From: Dicyema japonicum | Taxonomy: Eukaryota > Animalia > Dicyemida | Assembly (NCBI GenBank): GCA_011109175.1 | Contig: RDEW01000022.1 | Coordinates: forward strand, 291,834 to 355,833 | Direction: 5' to 3' | Length of the DNA stretch: 64,000 bases | Part shown: one piece after another, positions 6,252 to 55,720 of the stretch | How positions within the stretch are numbered: the first letter of the stretch is position 1 | Layout: the number at the start of each line of letters is the position of its first letter | Program-made: the position numbers and the translations under genes | The notes under the pieces: generated by a model | The model's database searches: none | Seen by the model: only the letters and a program-made list of their open reading frames with translations | Told to the model about the DNA's origin: nothing

Positions 6252-8090
6252 GAACGTAAAATCAAAATTGCGGCTAGAAAGAAATACTATCAAAGCAAAA
6301 ATAAGAAAAACTATACGCCAGCATAACAGAAATAAAGCACTGGACCAGATTAAGAAGATAGAATCTCTCAAGGACAACGCCAGATTTTACGAGGCTGTGA
6401 AACAGATAAAAGGAAATAGGCCCCATCAACCGATAATGATAAGAGATGACAAAGGAACGCAAATTGTGGACCAAATGGAAGTGGCTGAAATTATCGCTGC
6501 CCACTTTGGAAAACTTTTTGACCCAAGGAACGACACTATCAACCTAGAACGAGGAAAATTGGACGAGGAAATCACACCATATGAAGTTGAACTTGCGAGT
6601 TACAAGTTGAAAAACAACAGGACTCCTGGCCCCGACGGACTCGCTGGTGAATTCTTCAAATATTGAACCCAAAAGCTGTATGGATGCATCGCTAGGATCC
6701 TGAATGAAATGTACTATTATGGTCACACGCTGACCCTGGGAGAGGGTATCTTGATACCTGTACAGAAGGCGAATAAACCAAGATCTAAGGTGGAGAACCT
6801 CCGTCCGGTCATATTAATGAATTCACTTCGGAAAATTCTGGCGAACATAACATTACAAAGGATGGAAGGACGCCTAGATACTTTTCTGTCGCCATACCAC
6901 AGCGGATTCCGAAAAGGAAGATCTACTTCCGATGTTTTGTGGTCCCACAAGTGGAGATCTGCGGCCGTTCAAAAGTTCAAAATGTCTACAACCATCCTCG
7001 GAATCGACATTTCGAGGGCCTTCGACTCTGTCGACAGACGGAGGCTAATACTGGTTTTGGAAAGTTTCCTAGACGCTTCACTGTCAGAATGGCCACCACC
7101 CTCCTAGCTGATACTTGGCTCACTGTAAGAGTCGGGGGAGCCTTGTCTCGCCGATTTGAGACGACTGTTGGCACTCCACAGGGAGACCCATTATCACCTA
7201 TACTTTTTGTCATATACCTTGAAGCTGCTTTACGGGAGTCAAAACCGATAATGGGTGAAAAGACAAACATTATTGCGTATGCTGACGACGTAGACTTTAT
7301 TTCAAATGACAAAATACCGCTCACCCGCTTGATGGAAGAAGTGTCTGGAAGACTAGCCGAATGGTTCCTAACAGTAAATCCGGACAAGACTGACGTAACT
7401 GAACTCAAGAGGGAAGAAACAAGGACGGAGGAGTACTGGCGCAAATGCAAAAAGCTTGGCTCCCTCCTAGGAGACCATGAAGAAATTACGAGAAGGAAAA
7501 CCCTAGCACAAACTGCCCTCTCCAGATTAAAGAACATCTGGCTTCACAAAAAGGGCCTTGACATTATAACAAAAACTCGATTATACAACTCGCTAGTGAA
7601 ACCCATACTACTATATAACGCTGGTACCTGGGCCTGCTCAAGAAATGAACTGAAGAGGCTTAATTCGTTTCATAGAAACCAACTACAGCATATGATGTTC
7701 GAAAGAAGTGATACGAGGATGTCATCTAATCTTCTTATAAGAGGACGAAAACCTCAGAAAATTCAATGAAATTCTGGATACACGATGGAGGCTTTTCGGC
7801 CATATTTTGCGACTGGACCTAGATGCCCTCGCGAACGTAGCCATGGAGGATTACTTCATGTTGGAGGCCCCCCGTTTCCGTGGTCGCCCAAGGACGACAC
7901 TGGCAGTCGTTCTCGACGAGGACCTCAAAGAAATGGGACGGCATCTTGCAAGTGGAGAGGATCTTGACTGGTTGCGCACTGCGGCGTGAATAGGAGGAAG
8001 TGGATGAAACTAACCAGTGATTTGCTAACTCGTGTTGCACATGCTTTGTCAAGTCCTATGACATAGCGATAAGTGCTTATAATAATAATA
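6252..8090 (+). mobile_element. RTE-clade LINE, 5'-truncated, RT with frameshifts (copy A)
   Basis: KLKNNRTPGPDG, GIDISRAFDSV, PQGDPLSP, YADD, RWRLFGHILR..RGRPRTT, then a (TAA)n tail at ~8075-8090. Confidence 0.9.
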
Positions 8091-24850: not shown

Positions 24851-25014
24851 TCACAATTTGTGGGCTCCAACACCAAAAGGAGAAGCAGCACTATTGGCGT
24901 CCACAATACAATCCTTGTCATTTCCTTTTTTAAATTCTGTTCTGAAGATACCAGATCCTTTATGAGTTATTCTCATCGATCCAGAGATGTCAAACGAATA
25001 CACGATGTTCACGC

Positions 25015-25230
25015 ATTAATGTCATGTGCCAGTGCTAGGGTGGCACGAAAAAAATCATTTGCTCTCCCTACTACACTGGAAGGGTTCTCAAAACTGCAAG
25101 TAATGGACTTCTTTATACTGGTTCTGGATGGACTTGTGTGACATTGGAAGAACTCAGTGGGAACTGGATACACTTTTAGTTGATAACTTATATTTCTGGC
25201 TGTGTCCTCGGTTAATAATAATAAATAAAG
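25015..25230 (+). mobile_element. Diverged, internally deleted copy of the short non-autonomous element
   Basis: P4 GTGCT/GGCAC, cacgaaaaaa.atcatttgctct, 3' stem GGATACA/TGTGTCC, (TAA)n tail. Confidence 0.7.
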
Positions 25231-26110
25231 CTGAGATAATGAAGTGATTATTTACCCCGACAACTGCCAGAGAAATCCTTTGGAAAAATCATTCGGTTTC
25301 CCGACACTTATTGGTCACTTTCGATATCATTGACCCAAGCGATTTATTAAAAAGATCGTCTTGGACCCGAAGACTCCACTCGTCTAGACGACAACGGGCT
25401 GCACATGGAATCTGGTGGAGAGGCTGTTGTATTTTCTTATTTTAGGGTTTTCAAATGCTCGTGCTTCCCTCTATCGACTCGGAATCTGAAAATGTTGACT
25501 GGGAAAAGGTTTCTGTGCCTGCCCCATTCCAAATCAAGCATTTCCCCAGAGACAGGGAAGACTGTGACCACGATCCAGAACCTACTGGTTCCAGAGATGA
25601 CAAGAGAGCCCTTCAAGATCTCGTTAAAGGCGTATACTTTGGAAACCAGCCACTGCTGCATCGACTAAAAAGGGGTAAAGCCCTTTGCAGTCCACAACAG
25701 ATCCATATCGGCAGGGATGAGCACAGGTCAACCTGAGACAAACGGAAAGACCGATTCGAAGTGCATCCTGATCCAGAAAGGAACCAATTGAAGAGGATGG
25801 GAAAGTATGCAGTCAAACACCGAAGTAGAGGCCCCAGGCTTACCATTGTAAGCTCAGCACAAACAGTCATAACTAACTAATCCAAGGAAGGAACCAAAAG
25901 GAGAACATCTGCTTGTGCCAACCAAATCCATCTTCCAATACTCTCTTCCGCTTCCGAAGAGAGGTGGGAAAGTAGGTCACCCCTCTTCCATTTTTGTCCC
26001 ACGTCTTACCGCCGCGAATGCAACTGTGTCGTGCCAGAAGGACTAGTCGTCTCACGAGTGGGATCTGTTTGTTGACAAAAATTTACCTTCGCTGAAAATT
26101 CCATCTTTCA

Positions 26111-26164
26111 GATTTGAACCCACGACCTTCTGATCCGATTTCATCAAACGTTAACGCTCAGCCA
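26111..26164 (-). promoter_or_regulatory. tRNA-derived Pol III A/B box pair (SINE head or tRNA pseudogene)
   Basis: Minus strand TGGCTGAGCGTT (A box), ~32 nt, then GGTTCAAATC (B box). The cloverleaf arms do not pair well. Confidence 0.5.
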
Positions 26165-26346
26165 GAAGTGAAGAGAGTGACAGAATGATAGCCCGAATTT
26201 TAAAATAGTGATAGAAAAAAATTAAATTAAAATACAGCAAACCCTCATTAATCCGAACAAAAAAATTTGGATGCTTCTCAGATTGTGAAGGAAATAAATA
26301 TACTAATTTCATTTTAATTAATATTTATTTTTCATATATAAAAATA

Positions 26347-26660
26347 ATGTGGTGCTGCGTGTGGTTGAAGTTTTCCGCTTGCTTGTCTGTTCCTCCTTTC
26401 TCTTCCTAATAGAGTGGCGTCATGTGATCCACCTGTCTAGGTGACGCCCAGTGCCAGGCCGGCACGAAAAAGGATCATTTGCTCTTCACCACTCCACTGG
26501 AGGGGTTTTCACAACTGCATGTAATGGACGTCTTACCTTTTATGCTGATTCCGGATGGACTCTGTTTCTGTAGAAGTGGAAACTGGATACACTTAATTAG
26601 TTGGTTACTTTAACTTCTTTCTCGGTGTATCCGGGGTTAATAAATTAAAAAATAAATAAA
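26347..26660 (+). mobile_element. Short (~310 nt) non-autonomous retroelement with the HDV-like 5' module and the family 3' stem-loop
   Basis: Structured module 26416-26477, 3' stem GGATACAC/GTGTATCC (26585-26632), A-rich tail. Second copy at 47342-47650. Confidence 0.8.
26416..26477 (+). ncRNA. Putative HDV-like ribozyme fold in the short element
   Basis: P1 GGCGUC/GACGCC, P2 UGAUCC/GGAUCA, P3 ACC/GGU, P4 GUGCC/GGCAC, J4/2 (C)GAAAAA. Confidence 0.6.
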
Positions 26661-27159
26661 TTTTCAGCATCAATAAATTCCTCGTCGACATTATAATCTT
26701 CACAAAAAAATTCGTTCTAGTCGAGCATTTCTGCTTGAGTTATTTTTTCTTCATTAGAAAGTTCTTCCAGTTCTTTTTTGTACTCATTCAAAGCAGGATC
26801 TTGATGATATCTTTATTATCAAATTAATAGAGACATTTAATTTCCCATGTCCTATTGAAACAATTTTTATTGTGCCTTTTTTACTTCACGCGTGAGATAT
26901 CATGATTATGGCCTTCCGTAAATTCACAACATTTATTTTTCCGAATCAAGAACTTACATGTAATCCAAAATAAGTATTTTTCACAATAATGATTAAAGTT
27001 ATTGATTATGCCTGAATTCATTGGTTGAAGATGAGCAGTTATGTTTTTTGGAAGAACTAAAATTTTAATTTTCAAAAGATTTCGTTAAAAAGTGGCTTGG
27101 AGTATTATCTATCAGTAAAAAGAACTTTTTTCCTTAATATTTTAATTCATATTAAGGAA

Positions 27160-29169: not shown

Positions 29170-30586
29170 AGAAAGTTTTTCTTTTAAAAATTAGTCCATC
29201 AAAAGTTATATCCGTCATCATTGGGGACAAATCGATATCTAACAATAAACCACCAAACTCAAACCAAAATCACTCTCAGAATCATCATCCAAAACACTCT
29301 CAAATTTTGTCTGCTTGGTCTTTTCGTCCTCTTTATTCGTCGTGGACACCTGAAAATTTATAAACTTTGTACGGTTTTCTTCAAAATTAGGGCACATTAA
29401 AGGAGGATAAAATTCAGACGGTTCTTCAATGTTATTAAATAGATCAATTGACATTCCCCCGAAATCATCTTTCATAATATCCTTCCTAGATTGTAAATAT
29501 GATAATGCGAAGCTACAGTCACAAAACGTGCAAACCGTGGTTTCTCATATTCTTCATCACAAGAATCGCCAAAATCAACTTTATTTCCCGCCTCAAAATT
29601 AAATCCTCCATCTTTATTATGTTGGCGGCTGATTTTGGTCCAGTTTCGATCTTGAGATTCTTTGTTCACGTTGCGTTCAACTCCGCTTCAATTTTTGGTT
29701 CAAACCTCTGCGATCTTCTGATTTGAGTCTCCGCATTAGCTTCATCTCTCTTATTCCGATATCTGTCACGAGTTACATCATCCCGTCGATCATATCTCCT
29801 AGGAGCTTCACGGCTCGAGCGTTCTTGCACGTGGTCTCTTCTATTGTAAGGGGTGTAAGCGGAATATGGCCTCCTATCAGGTCTTCCACGTATGGAAGAA
29901 TGAAAATCGAAATTTGTGGAATAATATATCTTCCCCGACGAAGTTTTAGTAAAATCACATAAAACATCTACAAAATTAATGGACATTTACTTTCACCAAC
30001 TGGTCTCTGACTCCGATGAATTCTGGGTCTATTTTGGGGGTATTCATAGACGTAATCCGATCTCGTATCCCTAAATGATTCCTCTTTGCGAGGGTTCTCG
30101 GATTTGGAGGCAATGTCAGTCCTTCTTGAGTATGGGAGATTAGAATCTGAGTCAAAGTTGCTATTATTATAGGATTTGGGAGCAATGTCAGTCCTTCTTG
30201 AGTATGGGAGATTAGAATCTGAGTCAAAGTTGCTATTATTATAGGATTTCGGAGCAATGTCAGTCCTTTTAGAGTACGGGAGAATAGGATCTGGTTCAAA
30301 GTCCCTATCATTGTAGGGTTGGTGAACATATCGTGGTTGTTTCCTGTTAAGTTCTCCAGCTCTGAATTATAGAGAAATGCCAACTGTATTTTTCTGTATT
30401 GGGGCGCGAATGATAACAGAGCCTGAGAAACCCTGCCCATTCTGTTGTGCAGTCAAAATATCTTGTTGGACGGTCTATGTAAAGAATATTAGTACCTTGT
30501 AGTATTCCTCGTCTTCCTTGTTTTTTAGGGAAATTTCCTTAATTTTTTCGTCAAGTAGCTTTTCGTTCTAAAGTTAGTTAAAAGAT
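29170..30586 (-). CDS. Orphan hydrophilic protein with N-terminal coiled coil (weakly CCDC9-like) and 24-aa tandem repeats; 21-26-nt introns, indels
   Basis: MSNFTIDEE|NEKLLDEKIKEISLKNKEDEEYYK|TVQQD with introns gtaatc..ttag, gtacta..atag, gttggc..tcag, gtaaat..gtag. Two frame breaks are unexplained. Confidence 0.5.
30100..30300 (-). repeat. 72-bp tandem repeat, ~2.7 copies (TDIAPKSYNNSNFDSDSNLPYSRR)
   Basis: caatgtcagtcc recurs at 30111, 30183 and 30255. Confidence 0.95.
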
Positions 30587-30880: not shown

Positions 30881-33192
30881 CTAGACACCTGCGCACGCTC
30901 CTCGTACACATGGTCTAGCTCTATGTTGTTTGATGATGTTGTTATTAATAAAAGAAAGATTTTAATTAAAAAGAGATGTATCATAAACTATCTGGGAACA
31001 CCTAAAACGATGTTTATTGTTTTACCGGTTGTATCCACCATGACTTTTACCTAAAATAAAACATAATTAATGTATCTCACATTCTCTTTAAATTTTCCCC
31101 TGCTCAAAGCAACGTAGAGTTGTCCATGTTGAAACACAGGTCTTTCCAAACGCACAAATACCTTGTTCATCGTCTGTCCATGAGCTCTGTGTATAGTCAT
31201 AGCGAAACATATTTTCATTGGAAATTGCGTTTTTTTTAACAGTATGCTCTCCAAACAGATTTTAATTCTTGGAATCATTCGCGTGGCGCCATGTGGTGCT
31301 ACGTGGATAGTTGTAGTTTCCTTCCTTCCGATGGCGTCACTTGATTTACCTTACTGAGGAGTCTCCCAATGCCTGGCCGGAAGATCCAACAATTCTTCCA
31401 GGGGACAACGTCGTTACCTGGTGACAAATTCTTAATTACTAAATCGCCTTTAAATTGACCAAGTAGTATTTTCCAACAGTCAAATTCTTGTGCAACTCAA
31501 TCACGACTAAACGTGTCCCATTACATGGTTTGGGAGGCTGCAAATTTTTCATCAACGTGATTGGATAACCAATTTTTAATTCTAATAAATGATCTGGAAG
31601 TCCCGAGATTTCAACAGACTGTAAAAAATCTTCCGGGTAATGGGTGCGATTATGACCATTTTTTACTCCATTAAACGAAACATAATTTGTTTGAAAACCG
31701 GGAAACCGTATATAAATTATTAACTTCTTTAACCATATTATCTGTTACTAATATACAATTATTAACAAATAAGGAAAATGGATCGGAGAAAAATAAAAAA
31801 GATATTCTACTCTCGAATCTGGAGGTAACGTTATATTCTGATTAATGTCCTTAAATATTTTATTTTCCCCAACACGCAATAAAAATTCTGAATGTGATAG
31901 AGAGGCATCCGAAATTCGCATATTTATAGTTAACTCACATTTATTCATGTGTCTCCATAAATATGATTTTTTAATGCAGACATTGATAATATCTGCATTT
32001 GTGCCTCTCTTCACGATTGGAAGAATTTGACGGAAATCACCGCATAACACGGTTAAAATTCCTCCAAAAAACGACTACAATTTTTTGACATTCTGGAGGG
32101 TTCTATCCACCACTTCAAAACACTCTTTTAAATAATAGGACTTTCCCATACGATTATATTAGTAAGTTTGAACAATTTTGCAATGTTTGAATTTTTAGGA
32201 ATTGGCAATTAGAATTGTTAAAAATTTTTATTGTATTTTAAACCTCAAATTATTTTCAAAACAATGAATAATATAATCAGAAATCAATTTTTGTTGATGA
32301 ATTAATTTATAATCAATTTTGCTGATGATTACTTAAAAAATCTTCCATATTTCAGAAATTAATAATGAATTGCATTATTAGTTTCTGAATTTACAGGAAT
32401 ATTAGTGGGAGTAGGTAAATTGAAATCACTTAATGATTTATCAAAGAAATAATTTATCTTGAATATGTGAATTATATCTATCTTGGCATTATTGTATGAA
32501 ACGAAATCTTCAGACATGTGAATATGGAAATCATTAAAGACAATGGATCAGAAGTATCAAGGTTCAATAATAAAATAACAAATAGATCAGGCATCGCGCG
32601 TGGAAATTGCGTTGATTTAGCATCTTCCATTATCAATAAATACTGATCATCATGCAGAAATAAACCACGTGATTCACAAACACTCTTAGAAGAATTATGT
32701 AAAACTCCTTAAAAATTCAAAAGAGGTTGGTATATCTTCACGGGAAATTGCGTTCTTTCACCGTATGCTATTCTGCTATACTGTTCTGCTGATTCTTCAG
32801 CTAGCATTTGTTTGCCATGTGTTCTCAATTCAGCTTACCGATTGCTATGCTGTTCTGCCGATTCTTCAATCCGCAATTGTTGTGTACATGTCCTCAATGC
32901 GGCTAACCGACTCTTATGCTGTTTTGCTAATTCTTCATCCCATTTGTAGTGCATGTTTCCTCAATTGCATTAAACGATCACTATGTTGCTCTTTAGTTTC
33001 ATTAAATCGGGCATTTCCCATTGCAATTCTCTATTTGAGTACGATCTGTAAAAATCGGTTTTCTCTTTCCAAAAAACATCACCAACAAAATTAAATTAAT
33101 ATCACGCTAATAACCAATTTAAACACATATTAAGCACGCTATAATAACCAATTTAACAATAACCAATTTAAACACGTAGTTTCATATATAGA
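30881..33192 (-). mobile_element. Internally deleted Helitron with PIF1-like helicase remnants
   Basis: 5' A|TCTATATAT at 33192. 3' hairpin GTGTACG/CGTGCGC then CTAG|T at 30881. Motifs GDFRQILP, CNGTRL, QFP..FAMTIHRAHGQT, HGQLYVALSR. Confidence 0.85.
31281..31437 (+). mobile_element. ~157-nt insert carrying the Ingi/Vingi-like 5' signature, antisense within the Helitron helicase
   Basis: Starts gcgtGGCGCCATGTGGTGC, with P1 partner TGGCGTC at 31332-31338. The helicase reads GDLV|MIPRI across it. Confidence 0.6.
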
Positions 33193-33849: not shown

Positions 33850-34240
33850 CCTCCAATATCAATTTACATGTAATTTGGTAAAAATAGCCAACAACGTTCA
33901 GATCATGAGGCACATACAATCAGACTCCACATCCGTCCCCAGTCTGTTTTCAGAGGAGGCGACGTTGAAAAATGGCCAGGGTTTCATACGTTTCTGCAAG
34001 GAACTGGGAAACCCACTCAAGGAAAAAATAGCCCATGCAAAGGAATTTCGGTCGGTTATAAGAAAAAAAGTGCACGCCGATTGAATTCCTTTGCAGAAGG
34101 AAGAGAAGGCGCTTCCGGAATGCGGTTGGGTCATCAGAAGACCAGATGAAGAGAGTTCGAATGTTGTTGGAGGCTGGGATCACCTAATTAGTTAGTTTTG
34201 ACCTATCTTTCTTGGTGGTCTTGAAGTTAAATAAATAAAT
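33850..34240 (+). mobile_element. Ingi/Vingi-like 3' end
   Basis: FCKELGNPLKEK..MLLEAGIT-TAA-TTAG-TTAG, stem GGGATCACC/GGTGGTCTT, (TAAA)n tail. Confidence 0.75.
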
Positions 34241-36860: not shown

Positions 36861-37100
36861 TAAAACAGAGTAAATATTTTCAATGTCATTATTGATTGAA
36901 CGCGGCAACATAGTGAATGGTGATAATTGATCCCACGCTCGCATTTATTTAAAAACTCGAAAAAATTAAAAAATGAAAAATAAAAATCAATAAATTTTTT
37001 GACTTTTTTTGACATTACCCAAAATTTTGACTTTATAACTTTTGATTAATATAATATTTTTGACTAAAAACTACATTTTTACATTTCTTTAATTAATTTA

Positions 37101-38170
37101 GCGTGGGTCATGTGGTTCACTATTTATGGTGCGTCGGATGTAGTCCTAAACTATATCTAAAAGGAACCATTTGCTCTACTAACCAGAGGACGTCCGACTG
37201 GACAGCATTCTCTCCATGTTGGAACATTTCATCCATTGAGATTGTTGACTTCAGGAGACGTGGAACAATATCCAGACCCAATGAAGTTAACAATCTAGAG
37301 CGTAAACATAAACGGGATCAGAGGAAAGATTGCCGAACTTTCCTTATTCTTGGAGAGGAACATAGTAGATATCTGCCTTCTCCAGGAAACGAAGCTTTTA
37401 AAAAACATTCCTACTCCTCTTTTTAATGGATACAACACAATAAGATCCGACCGTCCATCTGTCCAAGAAGGGAGTCTACTGGGTCTTGTAGAAAAGGAAA
37501 AAATATCTTGAGAACCCTTCTTACAATGATTACAAAAATGCAAATTTGACTGGCTTTACAAATTCTGTTGACTCAAAACTGCTAAACTTCTACCCTGAAA
37601 AATTCTCCTCCATAGACAAAGCACTATACAATCATTGACGGGAGAAAAATTTTTGCCAGAAAAGCATATATAAAATAAAATACGACTCAAGAACAAAGAA
37701 ATAGTTATGGAAAGAAACACCCTTAAGAGAATGGCACATCGATCACGAGAAGTCATTAATCGAATCAGGGCACTAAACATTCTGATCACGAAAAAGACGT
37801 ACAATATTCGAAGGAAGAAATCATGCAAATCTCTGCTGCCATGAATAATCAGATGTCAATTTCCAACATGTGGAAGATGTTGATGTGTCTGAAGAACCCA
37901 GAATACGAAGATAACAAATGGCCCCGCTTACTTATTTTCTTCCTAAAAATGTATTCAAATCAATATCAAATCATAAAAAAACACACTCATGTGACCCAGA
38001 CGGAATTCCTCTTATTCCGCTGAGACACTTGGGCCCAGCATCAATAAATGCATTGACAATCACTACAACACATCGCTAAACATAAATACAAAACTTTATG
38101 GAAACTATCAAAAATTCGTCCAATATTGAAACCGGGAAGACCGAGATCTGATAATAAGTCATTGAATCGT
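37101..38170 (+). mobile_element. Ingi/Vingi-like 5' fragment with degenerate structured module and 2A-like motif
   Basis: P2 TGGTTC/GAACCA (37113-37169), P4 GATGTAGT/ACTATATC, SGDVEQYPDP (37251-37280), then APE start. Confidence 0.7.
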
Positions 38171-40480: not shown

Positions 40481-40490
40481 TGATTTTTTA

Positions 40491-42160
40491 GCGTGGCGTC
40501 ATGTGGCTCACTTGATGCAACAATTCTGGAGGCGCTCAAAATGCTCCTAATGCATTATCAAAAAGAGCCATTAGCTCTCTTCCACCGGGGGTACATGTCG
40601 CCCCCGGTCGACGGATTACTGGTCTGGCTACAGCTTCTCGGATTCGCATCCTACACAAGTCAAAGGACCGGATCTCCGTTATACAACTGAATGTGAATAA
40701 AAGGCAAAATTATTGAACTTAGAACTCTGATTGTTAAACTTAAAGCTGACATTGTGCTCATCCAAGAATCGAAGCTATCAGCAAAAGATACTACGCCCCT
40801 CTTTCCCGATCGCACTAAGAAACGTGGAGGAGGACTACTTACATTAATCAGAAAAGGCATAAAGTATGAGGACCATAGACTCGAAGCGAAGAAACTTTTG
40901 GGGAGTGATGAAACCACGGAGACAATCGGAATATCTGTCGGCACAACAAAATTAAGACTATATTTTGTAAACATGTATATTCCGCTTCCGGCTCATGTCG
41001 GAAACATTACACTATGTCGGACTTATCAGCACTGGAGATTTTGAACGAAGTCGTGATATGCGGCAATTTGAATGCCAAACACCCTCTCTGGTTCTTAAAT
41101 CAGTCTGCAGATACAAGAGGAAATCTGCTGTTGACGCAGTCTGGCATTCTGACAATCATCAATGACCCCTCAAAACCACAAGAACACCTCAAAGGAACTC
41201 TGACAATCCAACCTCCCCGGATATCACACTCTGTTCACCACAGCTTTCAACAACGATTAATTGGTCCGTCATCTACGACACCCGAAGTGATCATAATCCT
41301 ATTCAGCTAAAAATCAAAAGCGAAATTACCAGTGGAAAAAAGAAACCTGCATATACAATCTTGCAAATTGGCAATTATTCCGATCAGTTACAGATTAGCA
41401 TTTGGCTAATATACAGCTGGAAAACTTTACCTCCCTTGATATAGTTGTTGCCTACGTCAACAAAGTCATCTTGGAAGCAAGAACAATGACTGTCCCTAAA
41501 AGATATGTCGTTTACACGAGAGAGTACGGAAGAAGGCTCTGGTCAAGGAACGAAACCGTCTCAAAAAAGCAGGGATTCGTTCCTCCAGATCAAATATCCG
41601 TCTAAAAGTGATGAACAAGAAAATAAAAGCCAATGAATTCAAAATACAGAGAGCTAAATGGAAGATGGTCTTTACGTCAATAATTCGTACCGGTCAACAT
41701 CCGAAGTCTGGAAGACTATTCGAAATATCTCGAAGGTGGATGAGAGGACACCCGGAAATGACGAATTCTGCCAAAATGACCTAAACGCCCTAATAAAATA
41801 CTACGCGAAAATCTCTCACAACAACCACATGAGGACTTACCACCCAAACCGCCGCTAAAAAACCGAAAAGGGATCAATTAACTTATTTCACGGAAAAGGA
41901 GGTAGTGGCATCCTTAAGCCAAACAAAAGTAACACATTCTCATTGTCCAGACGGAATTCCCATAATCCTCCAGAAAAACCTAGGCAATGAGGGAATCTGT
42001 ACCCTGACCAAAATCTACAACTGGTCGATTAATTATAACTCAATCCCAACGGTATGGAAACTTGCAAACATTTGCCCAGTATTGAAGCCAGGAAAACCGA
42101 AAGAAGACCCTTCAGGCCTTTCTCATGCTCCATGTCAAAAATTCTGGAAAAGCTTATATT
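40491..42160 (+). mobile_element. Ingi/Vingi-like 5' half (structured module, APE, start of RT)
   Basis: P1 GGCGTC/GGCGCT, P2 TGGCTC/GAGCCA (40495-40570); LIQESKL, GGGLLTLIR, CGNLNAKHPLW, VWKLANICPVLKPGKP. Confidence 0.8.
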
Positions 42161-47341: not shown

Positions 47342-47650
47342 ATGTGGTGCTGCGTGGTTAATTGATTGAAGTTTTCTTGCTTGCTTGTCTGTTCCTCCTC
47401 TCTCTTCCTAATATGTGATCCATCTGTCTAGGTACGCCCAGTGCCAGGCCGGCACGAAAAAGGATCATTTGCTCTTCCCCACTCCACTGGAGGGGTTTTT
47501 ACAACTGCATGTAATGGACGTCTTACCTTTTATGTTGATTCCGGATGGACTCTGTTTCTGTATAAGTGGAAAACTGGATACACTTAATTAGTTGTTCACT
47601 TTAACTTCATTTCGGTGTATCGGGGTTAAAAATTAATTAATATAAATTAA
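47342..47650 (+). mobile_element. Second copy of the short non-autonomous element; lacks the 5' strand of P1
   Basis: Highly similar to 26347-26660 with the same start (ATGTGGTGCTGCGTG). An 11-nt deletion removes gagtggcgtca. Confidence 0.85.
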
Positions 47651-47929
47651 ATACCCACATTTATTATAAAAAAAAAGGAAAAAGAATAGTTAATGTTAAT
47701 TCAGCTGTTGGGAGATGCACAAGCTATTCCCACGGACAACAGCCAACGAGAGCCTCTCCTTGAGCCATCTCGTCTCACGAAGATCACCAAAAAAAATTAA
47801 ATTAATATAAATTAAATTACCCACATTTATCATTAAAAAATATAATTTAAATTATTATTTTCTGATATAAAACTTTTTTTGGTTGAGCTGGTGATTTCTT
47901 GAACTCAATGTCTGGAAAACACAGTATCA

Positions 47930-50460
47930 AGGCATTGAATTTTTCACGTTTAACGTCAGGGGACTCTCTATCGTTTGGAAACGGAAGGAACTGGTCGAGG
48001 ATCTTTCAAAATACTAGATTTCAATCGCCTGCCTTCAGGATACCAAACTAATCAACGGGATCGAAGAACAACATGGGAACGTTCGACTAATCTTCCTTCC
48101 AGGTGGAAACAAGCACTATGGGCTAGGATGATCTATCCAAAGAGTCTGCCGATATTACAGTGTGAATGATAGAATCGGGGTGTTGCAATTGAACCTGGAT
48201 GACCTCAACCCGTCGAAGAAATATCTAACTATAATAAACGTTTACACCTCACAGTCGATGGCTTAATAAAAACCCTGAGGAGATTGATGACTTTTACACC
48301 AGTCTTTCTGCCGTCTTCTCCAAGTATGCTCTCTCAACATCGCAGGAGACCTAAATGCGAAAGTTGGCACCTAGGTTACGACCGATGAGATATTCATGGG
48401 AAGGCATGGTCAGGAGGAAAAGAAATCTCCCGGGAACCCTACTAGCTAACTTCTGTCAAACGAACAACCTATTTTTATGCAATACAGCCTTCATGCATCC
48501 AGCCAGACATAAATCTACGTGGTGGGGACACAAAAAAATCCCGAAGGGCGAGTGATAAATACAACCAGATCGACTATATCATATCCAGGCAAAAAGATCG
48601 AGGATTATACTTGATGCACGAGCTTGTGGTGGATCGACAGCGACCACAAAATGGTTATTGCTAGACTTTCTCTATAGATATTTATGGTACTACAAAGAAC
48701 GAAATAAAAGTACATTAAAACCACAGAACCCAACTCTAGACGTTAATAACTGGCCATTCAAAAGAATATCTGGGAACTAGAAAACATGCCTACAGATTTA
48801 CCGCCTGGAAAATCCTGGGGTTTTGTAAAGCAGTCAATACACAAAGGAGCCAATCTGCATCTATTGAAAGAAAATGAGAAAATCCCATCGCACAATGACC
48901 ATGTACACGGTGAAGGACCTTGCCAATAAACAGAAGACCATATGGATGCTATATCAAAATACTGACGATTCTAACGTAATCAAAATTGCGGCTAGAAAGA
49001 AAAACTATACGCCAGCATAACAGAAATATAACACTGGACCAGATTAAGAAGATAGAATCTCTCAAGGACAACGCTAAACAAAGGAACGCAGATTGTGGAC
49101 CAAAGGAAGTGGCGGAAATTATCGCTGCCCACTTTGGAAAACTTTTCAATCCAAGGAACGACACTATCATCCTAGAACGAGGAAAATTGGACGAAGAAAT
49201 CACACCAATGAAGTTGAACTTGCGAGTTCCAAGTTGAAAAACAACAGGACTCCTGGATAAATTATACCATCCTTAAGGCTTATTTTTTACGATTTTCCGA
49301 GTTTTATGATTTTCCGAGTTCAATTTTTTCAGTTTTTTTAATTAAAAAATAAAAATAATAAGAAAATGAAAAAAATTATTTTTAAAAATGCGACGGATTC
49401 GAGAATTTCTCATAGGGAATTTTGTATTTTTGAAAAAATGCGGCGGATTCGAGAGGTTTTACTGTACTTTTCTGTCGTTATACACAGCGGATTCCGAAAA
49501 GGAAGATCTACTTCCGATGTTTTGTGGTCCCACAAGTGGATATCTGCGGACGTTCAAAAGTTCAAAATGTTTACAACCATCCTCGGAATCGACATTTCGA
49601 AGGCCTTAGACTTGTCGACAGACGGAGGCTAATACTGGTTTTGGGAAGTTTTCCTAGACGCTTCCACTGTCAGAATGGCCACCACCCTCCTAGCTGATAC
49701 TTGGCTCACTGTAAGAGTCGGGGGAGTCTTGTCTCGCTCATTTGAGACGACTGTTGGCACTCCACAAGGAGACCCATTATCACATATCCTTTTTGTCATA
49801 TACCTTGAAGCTGCTTTACTGGAGTCAAAACCGATAATGGATGAAAAGACAAACATTATTGCGTATGCTGACGACGTAGACTTTATTTCAAACGACAAAT
49901 TACCGCTCACCCGCTTGATGAAAGAAGTGCTGGAAGACTAGCCGAATGGTTCCTAACAATGAATCCGGACAAGATTGAGGTAACTAAACTCAAGAGGCAA
50001 GAAACAAGGACGGAGAAGCACTGGCACAAGTGTAAAAAGCTTGGCTTCCTCCTAGGAGACCATAAAAAAATTACAAAAAGGAAAACCCTAGCACAAACTG
50101 CCCTCTCCAGATTAAAGAACATCTGGCTCCACAAAAAGGGCCTTGACATTATAACAAAAACTCGATAATACAACTCGCTAGTGAAGCCCATACTACTATA
50201 TAACGCTGGTACCTGGGCCTGCTCAAGAAATGAACTGAAGAGGCTTAATGCGTTTCATGGAGACCAACTACGGCATATGATGTTCGAAAGAAGTGATACG
50301 AGGATGTCATCTGATCTTCTTTATAAGAGGACAAAGACCTCAGAAATTTCTAATGAGATTCTGGATACACGATGGAGGCTTTTTGGCCATATTCTGCGAC
50401 TGGACCTAGATGCCCCCGCGAACGTAGCCATGGAGGATTACTTCATGTTGGAGGCCAAAT
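47930..50460 (+). mobile_element. RTE LINE copy B (APE plus RT), closely related to copy A, 3'-truncated
   Basis: Long near-identity with 6252-7870; APE TFNVRG and YNQIDY upstream. Confidence 0.9.
49255..49464. mobile_element. pogo/Tc1-type terminal fragment inside RTE copy B
   Basis: Ends ggattcgagaggttttactg|TA, with a subterminal repeat aaaaatgcg.cggattcgaga. It replaces ~260 bp of RTE. Confidence 0.6.
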
Positions 50461-54400: not shown

Positions 54401-55720
54401 TGAAACTTTGGCTTGGAAACTTCTTAAATGGAGACGAGCACAAGTACTTTACAACAACATCAAATCAAGATCTCGCTACTTTCAAATAGAGTCCCTCAAG
54501 GCTCCCCACTGTCATCTCAACTCTCCAGTCTCTACATAAACGATATGCCACAAACCAATAATGAAAACTTTCTAATCCTTTCCTATGCCGACGATATCAT
54601 TTTTGCCTCCTAGGACAGAAGCATTCAATCAGTACCTCAGTCCGCTCAACAGATGCTTGACAAGCTGGAACTATGGATCTCTAAGCAAAACTCGAAATAA
54701 AGTCAATAAAGTCCTCTGTCATGCTGTTTACCACGTACAGAAGACAGCTTTGTGTCGAACCAAAAATCTCAACGAATAACGAGGCTGTTCCTATTAAAAA
54801 AGCACCGATGATTCTGGGAGTCACCTTTGATCAGGGACTTTCCTTTATCGGACATGTTGAGTACAAAGTAACTTCTGCTCTGAAGAAAATGAGATTTTTA
54901 AAAGTGTTCTCAAAACACAATCCTTCCCACGATGACTTATGTAAGTCCTTCGTGGGCAATGGAGAACTCACGATCCTCCTCATTGAAACTATCCGCAATC
55001 GAGGAGACTGCATTAAAGTTGATTGGACTAGAACACAAGATCCAACCTATTGAAAATCTAATTGGATTACAATAAAATTCTTAAAGGCGACCAGTCTACC
55101 GAACTGCCCCCTGTTTCATATACTATCGAAATATCTACAAACATGTGTAAAGTTTGAGCCGATGCCATGTCCAATGAGAAAAGCTGTACAGGATTCTCGA
55201 CCCTGCCGGACAAGTCCTCTCCATTGTCTTCCTGGGATCACTTAGTTAGTTGAGAATTTTTACTTCTTTCTCTTTGACCCAGTGATCCTGGGGGGTAATA
55301 AATAAATTTCAAATATTGGGCTACATCGTGTTTTTGAAAGTAAAAACTCAATACTCCGATGTGTTCCCAATGATGGATTGTGGAGGTCCCCAGTCTAAAG
55401 TTGAAGACGAAATCTACGTCTTTTTTGGAAATAAAATATTCAATCTACTTAATGAAAAGATTAGGGATTCGCCCTTTATAAAAATCCTGAGACTGCGAGT
55501 CGAGTACTTGGTGGATGTTGTTGAATGGTTGACACCTCTTTAATAACTAATAATACCTATGTCTTTATCGAACTCTCATTCTGTGGAGGCTTCGATGAAC
55601 TGAAGAGACGTGCTATGGGGAAAGTTACATGAAGAAAACTTGTAGAACGGATAGTGAAGAGCACAGGACAAGCGGAACCCTAAGTATTCATATGCTCATG
55701 GGTAACATGGGAGTGCATTT
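51480..55720 (-). CDS. WDR3: WD40 small-subunit processome protein Utp12/Dip2; many tiny introns, indels, and an antisense LINE in its 5' part
   Basis: YGHSLPTVSVDVSDD..ITGGADRQIRIWG; YVVTASSDNSIRLWSRIEE; Utp12 domain LLLLPYSYALD..FFLLRL; SDGLLKLWQLTSQQCFKT; MKEHKNPI. Probable N-terminal EVSTI..RLAV at 55450-55540. Ends are approximate. Confidence 0.8.
54380..55305 (+). mobile_element. 5'-truncated Ingi/Vingi-like LINE (RT to 3' end)
   Basis: VPQGSPLSS, SYADD, MILGVTFD; 3' stem GGGATCACT/AGTGATCCT (55234-55289), then (TAAA)n. Confidence 0.8.

Follow-up and report, generated by a model that had tools for sequence, protein, structure and literature searches.

In stringent LINE/SINE pairs such as UnaL2 and UnaSINE1, the partners share a 3′ stem-loop and short tandem repeats, and it is this stem-loop with its short repeat tail that the reverse transcriptase (RT) recognizes. 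The RTE, Ingi and R2 clades are known to include bipartite non-autonomous LINEs and 5′ ribozymes (PMC5786205, PMC3414825, PMC4035085). The LINEs that accompany the RIME and NARTc elements have a 2A motif that immediately precedes the AP endonuclease, and their first ~77 nt, a stretch shared with the non-autonomous partner, contain an HDV-like ribozyme (PMC3185411, PMC4035085, PMC3708506). In SINEs with an upstream head, an active 5′ ribozyme should behead the element (Kojima 2018, PMC5786205). The head of the LP-SINEs is a ~68-bp 5′ end common to Nimb-17_LMi, I-3_DR and RTE-9_CPB; Pol II transcription is suspected for these SINEs, and the authors of that work noted the parallel to the L1Tc promoter/ribozyme (Matetovici 2016, PMC4758252).

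The element at 26347 lies in a window of 64 kb (the whole stretch of DNA analyzed), which is AT-rich eukaryotic DNA. Judged by its sequence, it is a non-coding bipartite LINE derivative that comprises the first ~170 and the last ~85 bases of a LINE together with a leader of its own of ~70 bases. Our overall reading, which we hold to be likely, is that of a bipartite non-autonomous LINE, mobilized by a LINE, that has acquired a leader and inherited a ribozyme fold. The original prediction listed three copies; two full copies and a third, 5′-truncated one are indeed present where it placed them, and a decayed relative can be added:

26347–26660, + strand: full copy 1, the reference copy, ~310 nt.
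47342–47650, + strand: full copy 2, 88% identical to the copy at 26347, with GTTAAT kept and the P1 5′ strand absent.
25029–25229, + strand: third copy, older, 5′-truncated, ~74% identical, beginning inside the fold.
31279–31450, + strand: decayed relative; its leader start is complete (GCGTGGCGCCATGTGGTGCTACGTGG) and precedes a fold that has degenerated, and where the relative ends on the 3′ side is uncertain.

The loss of the P1 5′ strand in the copy at 47342 is due to an 11-nt deletion, and the copy at 25029 retains more of a 2A-coding remnant than both full copies. The longest ATG-initiated ORF in the two full copies measures 20 aa, and their short ORFs differ between copies.

The flanks bear on whether the copies are merely segmental duplicates, or chance fragments of longer coding LINEs, a reading that we consider extremely improbable. 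By BLAST, 37 nt of AT-rich upstream flank align between the full copies, as duplication would predict, but over 150 nt the upstream flanks reach a local alignment score of 26, within the range of shuffles (20.5 ± 3.2, maximum 38), and the downstream flanks are unrelated. The copies at 26347 and 47342 are therefore independent insertions; segmental duplication, which by its own terms would have refuted the original prediction, is not what the flanks show. Origin as fragments is contradicted by a single deletion junction in 3/3 copies, a depth of ~10^4 times that of unique sequence and a sharp 3′ boundary. A search for target-site duplications (TSDs) gave an ambiguous, low-complexity 7-nt AAAAATA candidate at 26347, in AT-rich DNA, and none abutting the copy at 47342. 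Beginning within the tail of the latter copy, a 47–49-nt direct repeat (47628–47674 and 47792–47840, 92% identical) flanks a ~117-nt insert with a terminal A-run; this repeat is either an unusually long TSD of a later retro-insertion or a local duplication.

The abundance and limits of the family were assessed with contigs from four public runs, three of this organism and one of a second organism, placed on 24900–27100 at ≥80% likeness. The runs are of unlabelled kind; the uniformity of their depth along unique sequence suggests that they are DNA. In run X1, the summed contig depth was 2.4–4.2 million across 26380–26675, a sum that is not a copy number and is usable as “order 10^4” only, over a baseline of 177–282 for near-perfect single contigs on unique sequence and 403–579 for unique bins; run X2 gave a similar ratio of element to unique depth. 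The element is thus very abundant, at roughly 10^4 times unique depth.

Past 26645–26649, the loose contig ends showed no consensus (agreement 0.45), which places the 3′ limit of the family there. Contigs of the second organism covered 26347–26508, 26385–26523 and 26504–26645, the best with 5 differences in 142 letters, and this close match indicates that the family is shared with a relative. All listed majority differences from the reference within the element (26376, 26398, 26488, 26509 and 26604) fall outside 26416–26477, so that the copy at 26347 shows the majority fold of the family. Two paralogous contigs join 26332 to 26660 by 23 other letters and lack the element; such an element-free paralogue of the older flanking repeat supports insertion. 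An exact 25-mer of the fold found no match in a metagenome scan, and a 21-kb Octopus sinensis locus contained LINE heads and no copy of the SINE.

The sequence on either side of the copy at 26347 (26232–26346 and 26661–26750) is itself a repeat, with a depth of 56,000–111,000 versus a few hundred for unique DNA, and its paralogues occur without the SINE.

For the 3′ part of the element (its positions ~221–312), the window holds five matching LINE-type 3′ ends; the alignments score 39–61, as compared to 22–24 ± 3–4 for shuffles. Alignments and folds alike confirmed the LINE-type 3′ stem-loop with a TAA-rich tail, as well as a 5′ module common to LINE heads, both of which had been recognized from the start. 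The 3′ module consists of two features:

26583–26636, + strand: LINE-type 3′ stem-loop, an 11-bp stem (26583–26593 with 26624–26634) around TTAATTAGTT, then GGGG.
26637–26660, + strand: TAA-rich tail, within which the copies diverge at about 26645–26649.

In the stem, CUGGAUACACU is paired with GGUGUAUCCGG, and the loop begins with UAAUUAGUU; the stem-loop at 26583 has a minimum free energy (MFE) of −18.7 kcal/mol (z −4.2). The same 3′ architecture, with compensating changes, is found at 34184, 21431, 55238 and 13948 (−). The 3′ ends at 55238 and 13948 (−) pair GGGAUCAC with GUGAUCC(U) (z −3.7 and −3.3), and that at 34184 pairs GGGAUCACC with GGUGGUCUU, including G-U pairs. The stem sequence varies between families with its pairing maintained; stems were judged by individual folds, the MAFFT alignment of the 3′ ends not being register-true for the stem. 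By analogy with the stringent pairs, the SINE 3′ stem-loop and tail would be recognized by the RT.

A second high-copy repeat lies nearby at 25832–26175 (−), with a summed depth of up to 1.0 million at 25862–25935. A B-box-like GGTCGTGGGTTCAAATC stands close to its 5′ end; the repeat also has the motif TTAGTTAGTT and the stem GCTTAC/GTAAGC, followed by CTGGGG, and other copies of it continue with TTAATAATAA. This repeat is probably a tRNA-related SINE with a LINE-type tail of the same kind; neither Rfam nor ARAGORN called a tRNA in it. A tandem repeat with a 72-nt period is also present in the window, at 30100–30328, in about three units that are 79–90% identical.

Between the two LINE-like ends, the original prediction saw ~100 nt of unique sequence. 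This part did not hold, since the stretch is homologous to the leader-peptide region of LINEs. Element positions 64–235 align to LINE 5′ ends, as far as the remnant of the 2A-coding motif, at 72–76% identity: 114/149 to the LINE head at 37099-/37104 and 107/148 to Octopus sinensis L001:9989-. The SINE 5′ part also matches the LINE head at 1949- (minus strand) at 77/102 positions, and alignments to LINE heads score 53–78, against 22–23 ± 3 for shuffles. The region and the LINE heads of the window are as follows:

26478–26582, + strand: region homologous to the part of LINEs that encodes the leader peptide, with the conserved CATTTGCTC, a second hairpin and a 2A-coding remnant, ending at the deletion junction.
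1865–1949, − strand: LINE 5′ head with the same fold, the ORF AUG in J1/2, a 58-aa leader, 2A (DIEQNPGP) and AP endonuclease.
40495–40588, + strand: LINE 5′ head of another subfamily, with P2 UGGCUC/GAGCCA and a different P4 hairpin.
37104–37179, + strand: decayed LINE 5′ head, the closest in-window match to the SINE 5′ part.

The deletion junction, ...GTGG(A/G)AACTGGATACAC, is common to 3/3 SINE copies and joins CTGGATACAC. In LINEs, the counterpart of element positions 64–235 contains the fold and the second hairpin and encodes a leader peptide of ~58 aa, whose terminal 2A motif (DIEQNPGP or DVEQNPGP) immediately precedes the AP endonuclease. A protein search with the LINE N-terminus returned three relatives, in a collection without this genome's LINE copies, the nearest being from Octopus sinensis; LOC115229065, an Octopus protein annotated at NCBI, shares 48% identity with the window LINE N-terminus and starts at the J1/2 AUG. 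A 2A directly before the endonuclease is found in the Ingi clade, including a mollusc element and Ingi-1_AC, and 2A also occurs in CR1, L2, Rex1 and Crack elements (PMC3708506). From the 2A-then-APE layout of its sequence, an Ingi/Vingi-like partner LINE is plausible. No intact LINE joining head to tail was found in the 64-kb window, where heads and tails come from several diverged subfamilies; one partner LINE may have supplied both ends.

An element bearing a Pfam RVT_1 reverse transcriptase is present in two copies of ~1.5 kb, 94% identical to one another, at 6303–7869 and 48997–50456.

The LINE-derived 5′ part contains a predicted fold with the order of HDV-like ribozymes, composed of the following parts:

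26416–26477, + strand: HDV-ribozyme-like nested double pseudoknot, found with the strict descriptor.
26416–26421 with 26443–26448, + strand: P1, GGCGUC with GACGCC.
26422–26424, + strand: J1/2, AUG.
26425–26430 with 26472–26477, + strand: P2, UGAUCC with GGAUCA, with UGA at 26425–26427.
26431–26433 with 26440–26442, + strand: P3, ACC with GGU; L3 is UGUCUA.
26452–26455 with 26461–26464, + strand: P4, UGCC with GGCA; J1/4 is CAG.
26465–26471, + strand: J4/2, CGAAAAA.

The strict descriptor was run on both strands and demanded six pairs without mismatch in P1 and P2, two inner P3 pairs, at least four pairs in P4, and a C followed by AAA within two bases in J4/2. It matched six start sites at five places in the window. 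Three of these places are 26416, 40495 and 1943 (−), and the remaining two (three start sites) are AT-rich low-complexity sequence; 10 dinucleotide-preserving shuffles of the window gave 0 matches. An earlier HDV descriptor had been discarded as too loose, with 475 start sites on the first strand scanned.

We aligned seven heads, a small sample made up of five LINE heads, two of them from Octopus sinensis, together with the SINE and the relative at 31333. In this alignment, 90.4% of cells were paired, versus 31–54% when the partners were slid, and five pairs were changed on both sides, versus 1.3 ± 1.0 expected (1/500 shuffles). Covariation in P1 and P2 extends over both LINE and SINE copies, those of the Octopus sinensis LINEs included: P2 occurs as UGGUUC/GAACCA, UGAUCC/GGAUCA and UGGCUC/GAGCCA, and P1 as GGCGUC/GGCGCU, GGCGUC/GACGCC and AUCGUC/GACGAU. 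At P4, the lineages have hairpins unrelated to one another. Before the P2 3′ strand, C(N)AAAA(A/G) stands in 5/6 LINE/SINE heads whose fold is intact, and the second head from Octopus has ACAAACA there; by analogy, this C with its adenosines would be the equivalent of C75/A77/A78. G1 is present, in a G-U pair in LINE copies and a G-C pair in the SINE (the usual pair is a G-U wobble). Either UG with CA or UC with GG can be drawn as a P1.1 mini-helix, at L3 positions that vary. The ENA contigs L002 and L003 showed no clear fold.

The paired P2 change UGAUCC/GGAUCA, which the original prediction had singled out, is real. It makes the codon after the J1/2 AUG a UGA with P2 still paired, so that AUG is directly followed by UGA, and no ATG ORF exceeds 20 aa. 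With coding lost and the helices kept, it can be argued that RNA structure, and not a peptide, was retained. On the modelled pairing, the fold is most likely an HDV-like self-cleaving ribozyme, now or formerly, inherited from the LINE.

Curated HDV-type Rfam models gave no match to the fold even at E ≤ 10; these models are narrow and do not encode the pseudoknot, so a non-match was expected, yet we count it as a failed test. Non-pseudoknot MFE folds of whole copies were likewise not significant (z −1.8 and +0.6). The Rfam result fits an alternative in which the 5′ module is a structured 5′ UTR or promoter element, acting in translation initiation, in protein binding or as a DNA-level promoter, with the HDV order arising by chance, as does the conservation of CATTTGCTC just after P2 at the nucleotide level even in the non-coding SINE. 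This alternative, to which the TTTAGCG described below also lends weight, nevertheless appears rather unlikely: low-complexity matches aside, the full P1-P2-P3-P1′-P4-P2′ order with the J4/2 C/A-run occurs thrice in the window versus 0 times in shuffles, P1 and P2 covary with P4 swapped for unrelated hairpins, and several LINE clades are known to carry HDV-like ribozymes at their 5′ ends (PMC3185411, PMC5786205).

Directly upstream of the predicted cleavage site, TTTAGCG(T/C) recurs at 37096–37103, 40486–40494 and L001:9986–9994, in two species. Conservation of TTTAGCG upstream of G1 in LINEs of two species is unexpected if cleavage sets the LINE 5′ end, and may reflect a transcription start or the alternative pairing AGCGU/GCGCU.

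In the SINE, the presumed ribozyme is preceded by a leader, whose parts are given here for the copy at 26347:

26347–26409, + strand: SINE-specific leader; its start ATGTGGTGC resembles the LINE head ATGTGGTTC, with a C/T-rich spacer after it.
26410–26415, + strand: TAGAGT, corresponding to the TTAGCGT that LINEs have before the fold; LINE homology begins here.

The fold thus begins 69 nt inside the copy at 26347 and ~85 nt inside the full family. Both full copies begin with ATGTGG, and the original prediction was correct about this common start base. It is not the true 5′ end, as family contigs continue with CGTGGCGCC in front of ATGTGG, a sequence missing from both window copies. Its presence upstream both in the contigs and in the relative at 31279 indicates that ATGTGG is not the 5′ terminus of the family. 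The consensus CGTGGCGCCATGTGGTGCTGCGTGGTTAAT stood in front of 26362 in 84 contigs of run X1, 40 of X2 and 9 of X5. The leader of the copy at 26347 falls short of the family 5′ end by at least 9 nt, and the 6-nt GTTAAT block is missing from it. The common ATGTGG start could mark a 5′-shortened subfamily or be a coincidence, two copies being too few to decide.

The SINE leader shares significant similarity with the leader of the relative at 31288–31325 (z 6.0 and 6.8) and has no homology to the sequence upstream of any LINE head compared. Its first bases, GGCGCCAUGUGGUGC, are a near-duplicate of the P1/P2 5′ strands of the fold. No Pol III-type head was found; the original prediction had seen no A/B boxes. 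ARAGORN detected no tRNA, and Rfam no match, the relative with the complete leader included; no relevant Rfam family was returned either for the whole window at gathering thresholds or for 26300–26700, 31240–31470 and 25800–26200 under permissive settings. A-box-like and B-box-like strings in the leader are poor and spaced too closely. The element was also considered as a Pol III SINE with a tRNA, 5S, 7SL or snRNA head and was not assigned to that class, the leader having no such similarity.

These results weigh on a further alternative, that of a classical SINE in which the leader is the true head with an unrecognized promoter, either for Pol III or of the LINE-type internal Pol II kind, and the fold is an inactive “middle body”. 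The leader is indeed SINE-specific, the old relative at 31279 conserves it, and sequence upstream of the predicted cleavage site is kept in many copies: depth 18 nt upstream of the site is ~60% of that of the body (1.52 versus 2.44 million at the listed positions), which implies that many copies derive from RNA uncut there. SINE middle bodies from LINE 5′ parts are documented, and an active ribozyme would truncate such SINEs (Kojima 2018, PMC5786205); in mollusc SINEs, a ~68–70-bp LINE-derived head is followed by a CT-rich stretch, and a LINE-type Pol II promoter has been proposed for LP-SINEs (Matetovici 2016, PMC4758252). The missing similarity to tRNA, 5S, 7SL or snRNA and the quality of the box-like strings speak against such a head, and the fold helices are intact in the family majority and kept via compensatory P2 changes, which suggests selection on structure, or simply young copies. 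On balance, we regard the classical SINE as possible and yet doubtful, and retain the reading of a bipartite element with an inherited ribozyme fold. Since the leader precedes the fold, an active ribozyme would cut the leader off, and a SINE leader ahead of an apparently intact fold is exactly the tension that Kojima described (PMC5786205).

In an Octopus sinensis LINE head at L001:3158–3173 (−), the 16 nt GGTTCACCTTCTCGTG (P2-P3-L3) are duplicated directly upstream of P1, a situation comparable to that in the SINE leader with its partial head duplicate. Template switching at the RNA 5′ end may give rise to partial duplications of this kind. Much more speculative, and in our view improbable, is the idea that the GGCGCCAUGUGGUGC duplicate in the leader acts as a decoy for the P1 3′ strand and restrains self-cleavage as a built-in attenuator, so that full-length RNA including a presumed promoter would be copied; if true, it would resolve why an active 5′ ribozyme does not behead a SINE with an upstream head.

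The following history would fit the bipartite reading. In the ancestral 2A-APE-RT LINE, the fold would have stood at the 5′ terminus and held the ORF start codon. This LINE would have lost everything from the 2A-coding motif to the 3′ stem-loop, leaving its 5′ end (HDV-like fold and hairpin) fused to a 3′ recognition module (stem-loop, GGGG and a (TAA)n-like tail). The endonuclease and RT of the LINE would then copy the element RNA into the genome via the shared 3′ stem-loop and tail, and amplification would have led to roughly 10^4 copies, a figure shown only roughly. The family would also have gained its leader of ~70–85 nt, starting with a partial duplicate of the LINE head.

For annotation, the family is to be treated as a LINE deletion derivative and not as a Pol III SINE. 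If the fold cleaves, a very abundant animal repeat family would carry thousands of HDV-like ribozymes, and the pattern of trypanosome RIME/NARTc and insect R2-SIDE elements would extend to a dispersed high-copy element of a mollusc-like genome. The leader before the ribozyme-like fold offers a test case of how ribozyme-bearing retroposons keep upstream sequence. A full-text search of one literature library recovered no account of an HDV-like ribozyme from an animal SINE-like family that is both dispersed and high in copy number, which is weak evidence.

Compared with known systems, the element resembles the pairs RIME/ingi and NARTc/L1Tc, in which a non-coding element combines a 5′ and a 3′ part of its LINE. 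This analogy, drawn in the original prediction, holds for the architecture and is closer than was claimed since the middle is LINE-derived too. Its extension to SIDER lacks support: SIDER elements are degenerate relatives of RIME/NARTc, and a role in UTRs has no support for the Dicyema element. Unlike the trypanosomatid elements, the family resides in an animal host, with its nearest LINE protein in Octopus sinensis; its tail is a stem-loop with a (TAA)n-like repeat, whereas theirs is poly(A), and its fold lies behind a ~70-nt leader and not at the very 5′ end.

R2 SIDEs (short internally deleted elements; Eickbush and Eickbush 2012, PMC3414825) and bipartite LINEs (PMC5786205) retain a 5′ HDV-like ribozyme together with an RT-binding 3′ end and are mobilized in trans by their parent; the deletion in the present element likewise spares a 5′ HDV-like fold and a putative RT-binding 3′ end. 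R2 SIDEs are rDNA-specific and of low copy number, whereas the element described here is dispersed, with ~10^4 copies, and has an extra leader upstream. SINEs of the UnaSINE1 type differ in having tRNA heads, the head here being LINE-derived.

The LP-SINEs of gastropods and bivalves (PMC4758252) resemble the element in having a LINE 5′ head, there of ~68–70 bp, a CT-rich stretch after it (in scallops) and tandem-repeat tails. LP-SINEs have been described neither as ribozymes nor with the 3′ end of the same partner LINE; going by the descriptions only, they and the present element may be the same thing. A ribozyme-like fold may also explain the ~70-bp 5′ end common to mollusc LP-SINEs and unrelated LINE clades. 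Overall, this comparison positions the element as one of a known kind (RIME/NARTc/R2-SIDE), whose odd feature is a leader with a partial head duplicate before an apparently intact predicted ribozyme.
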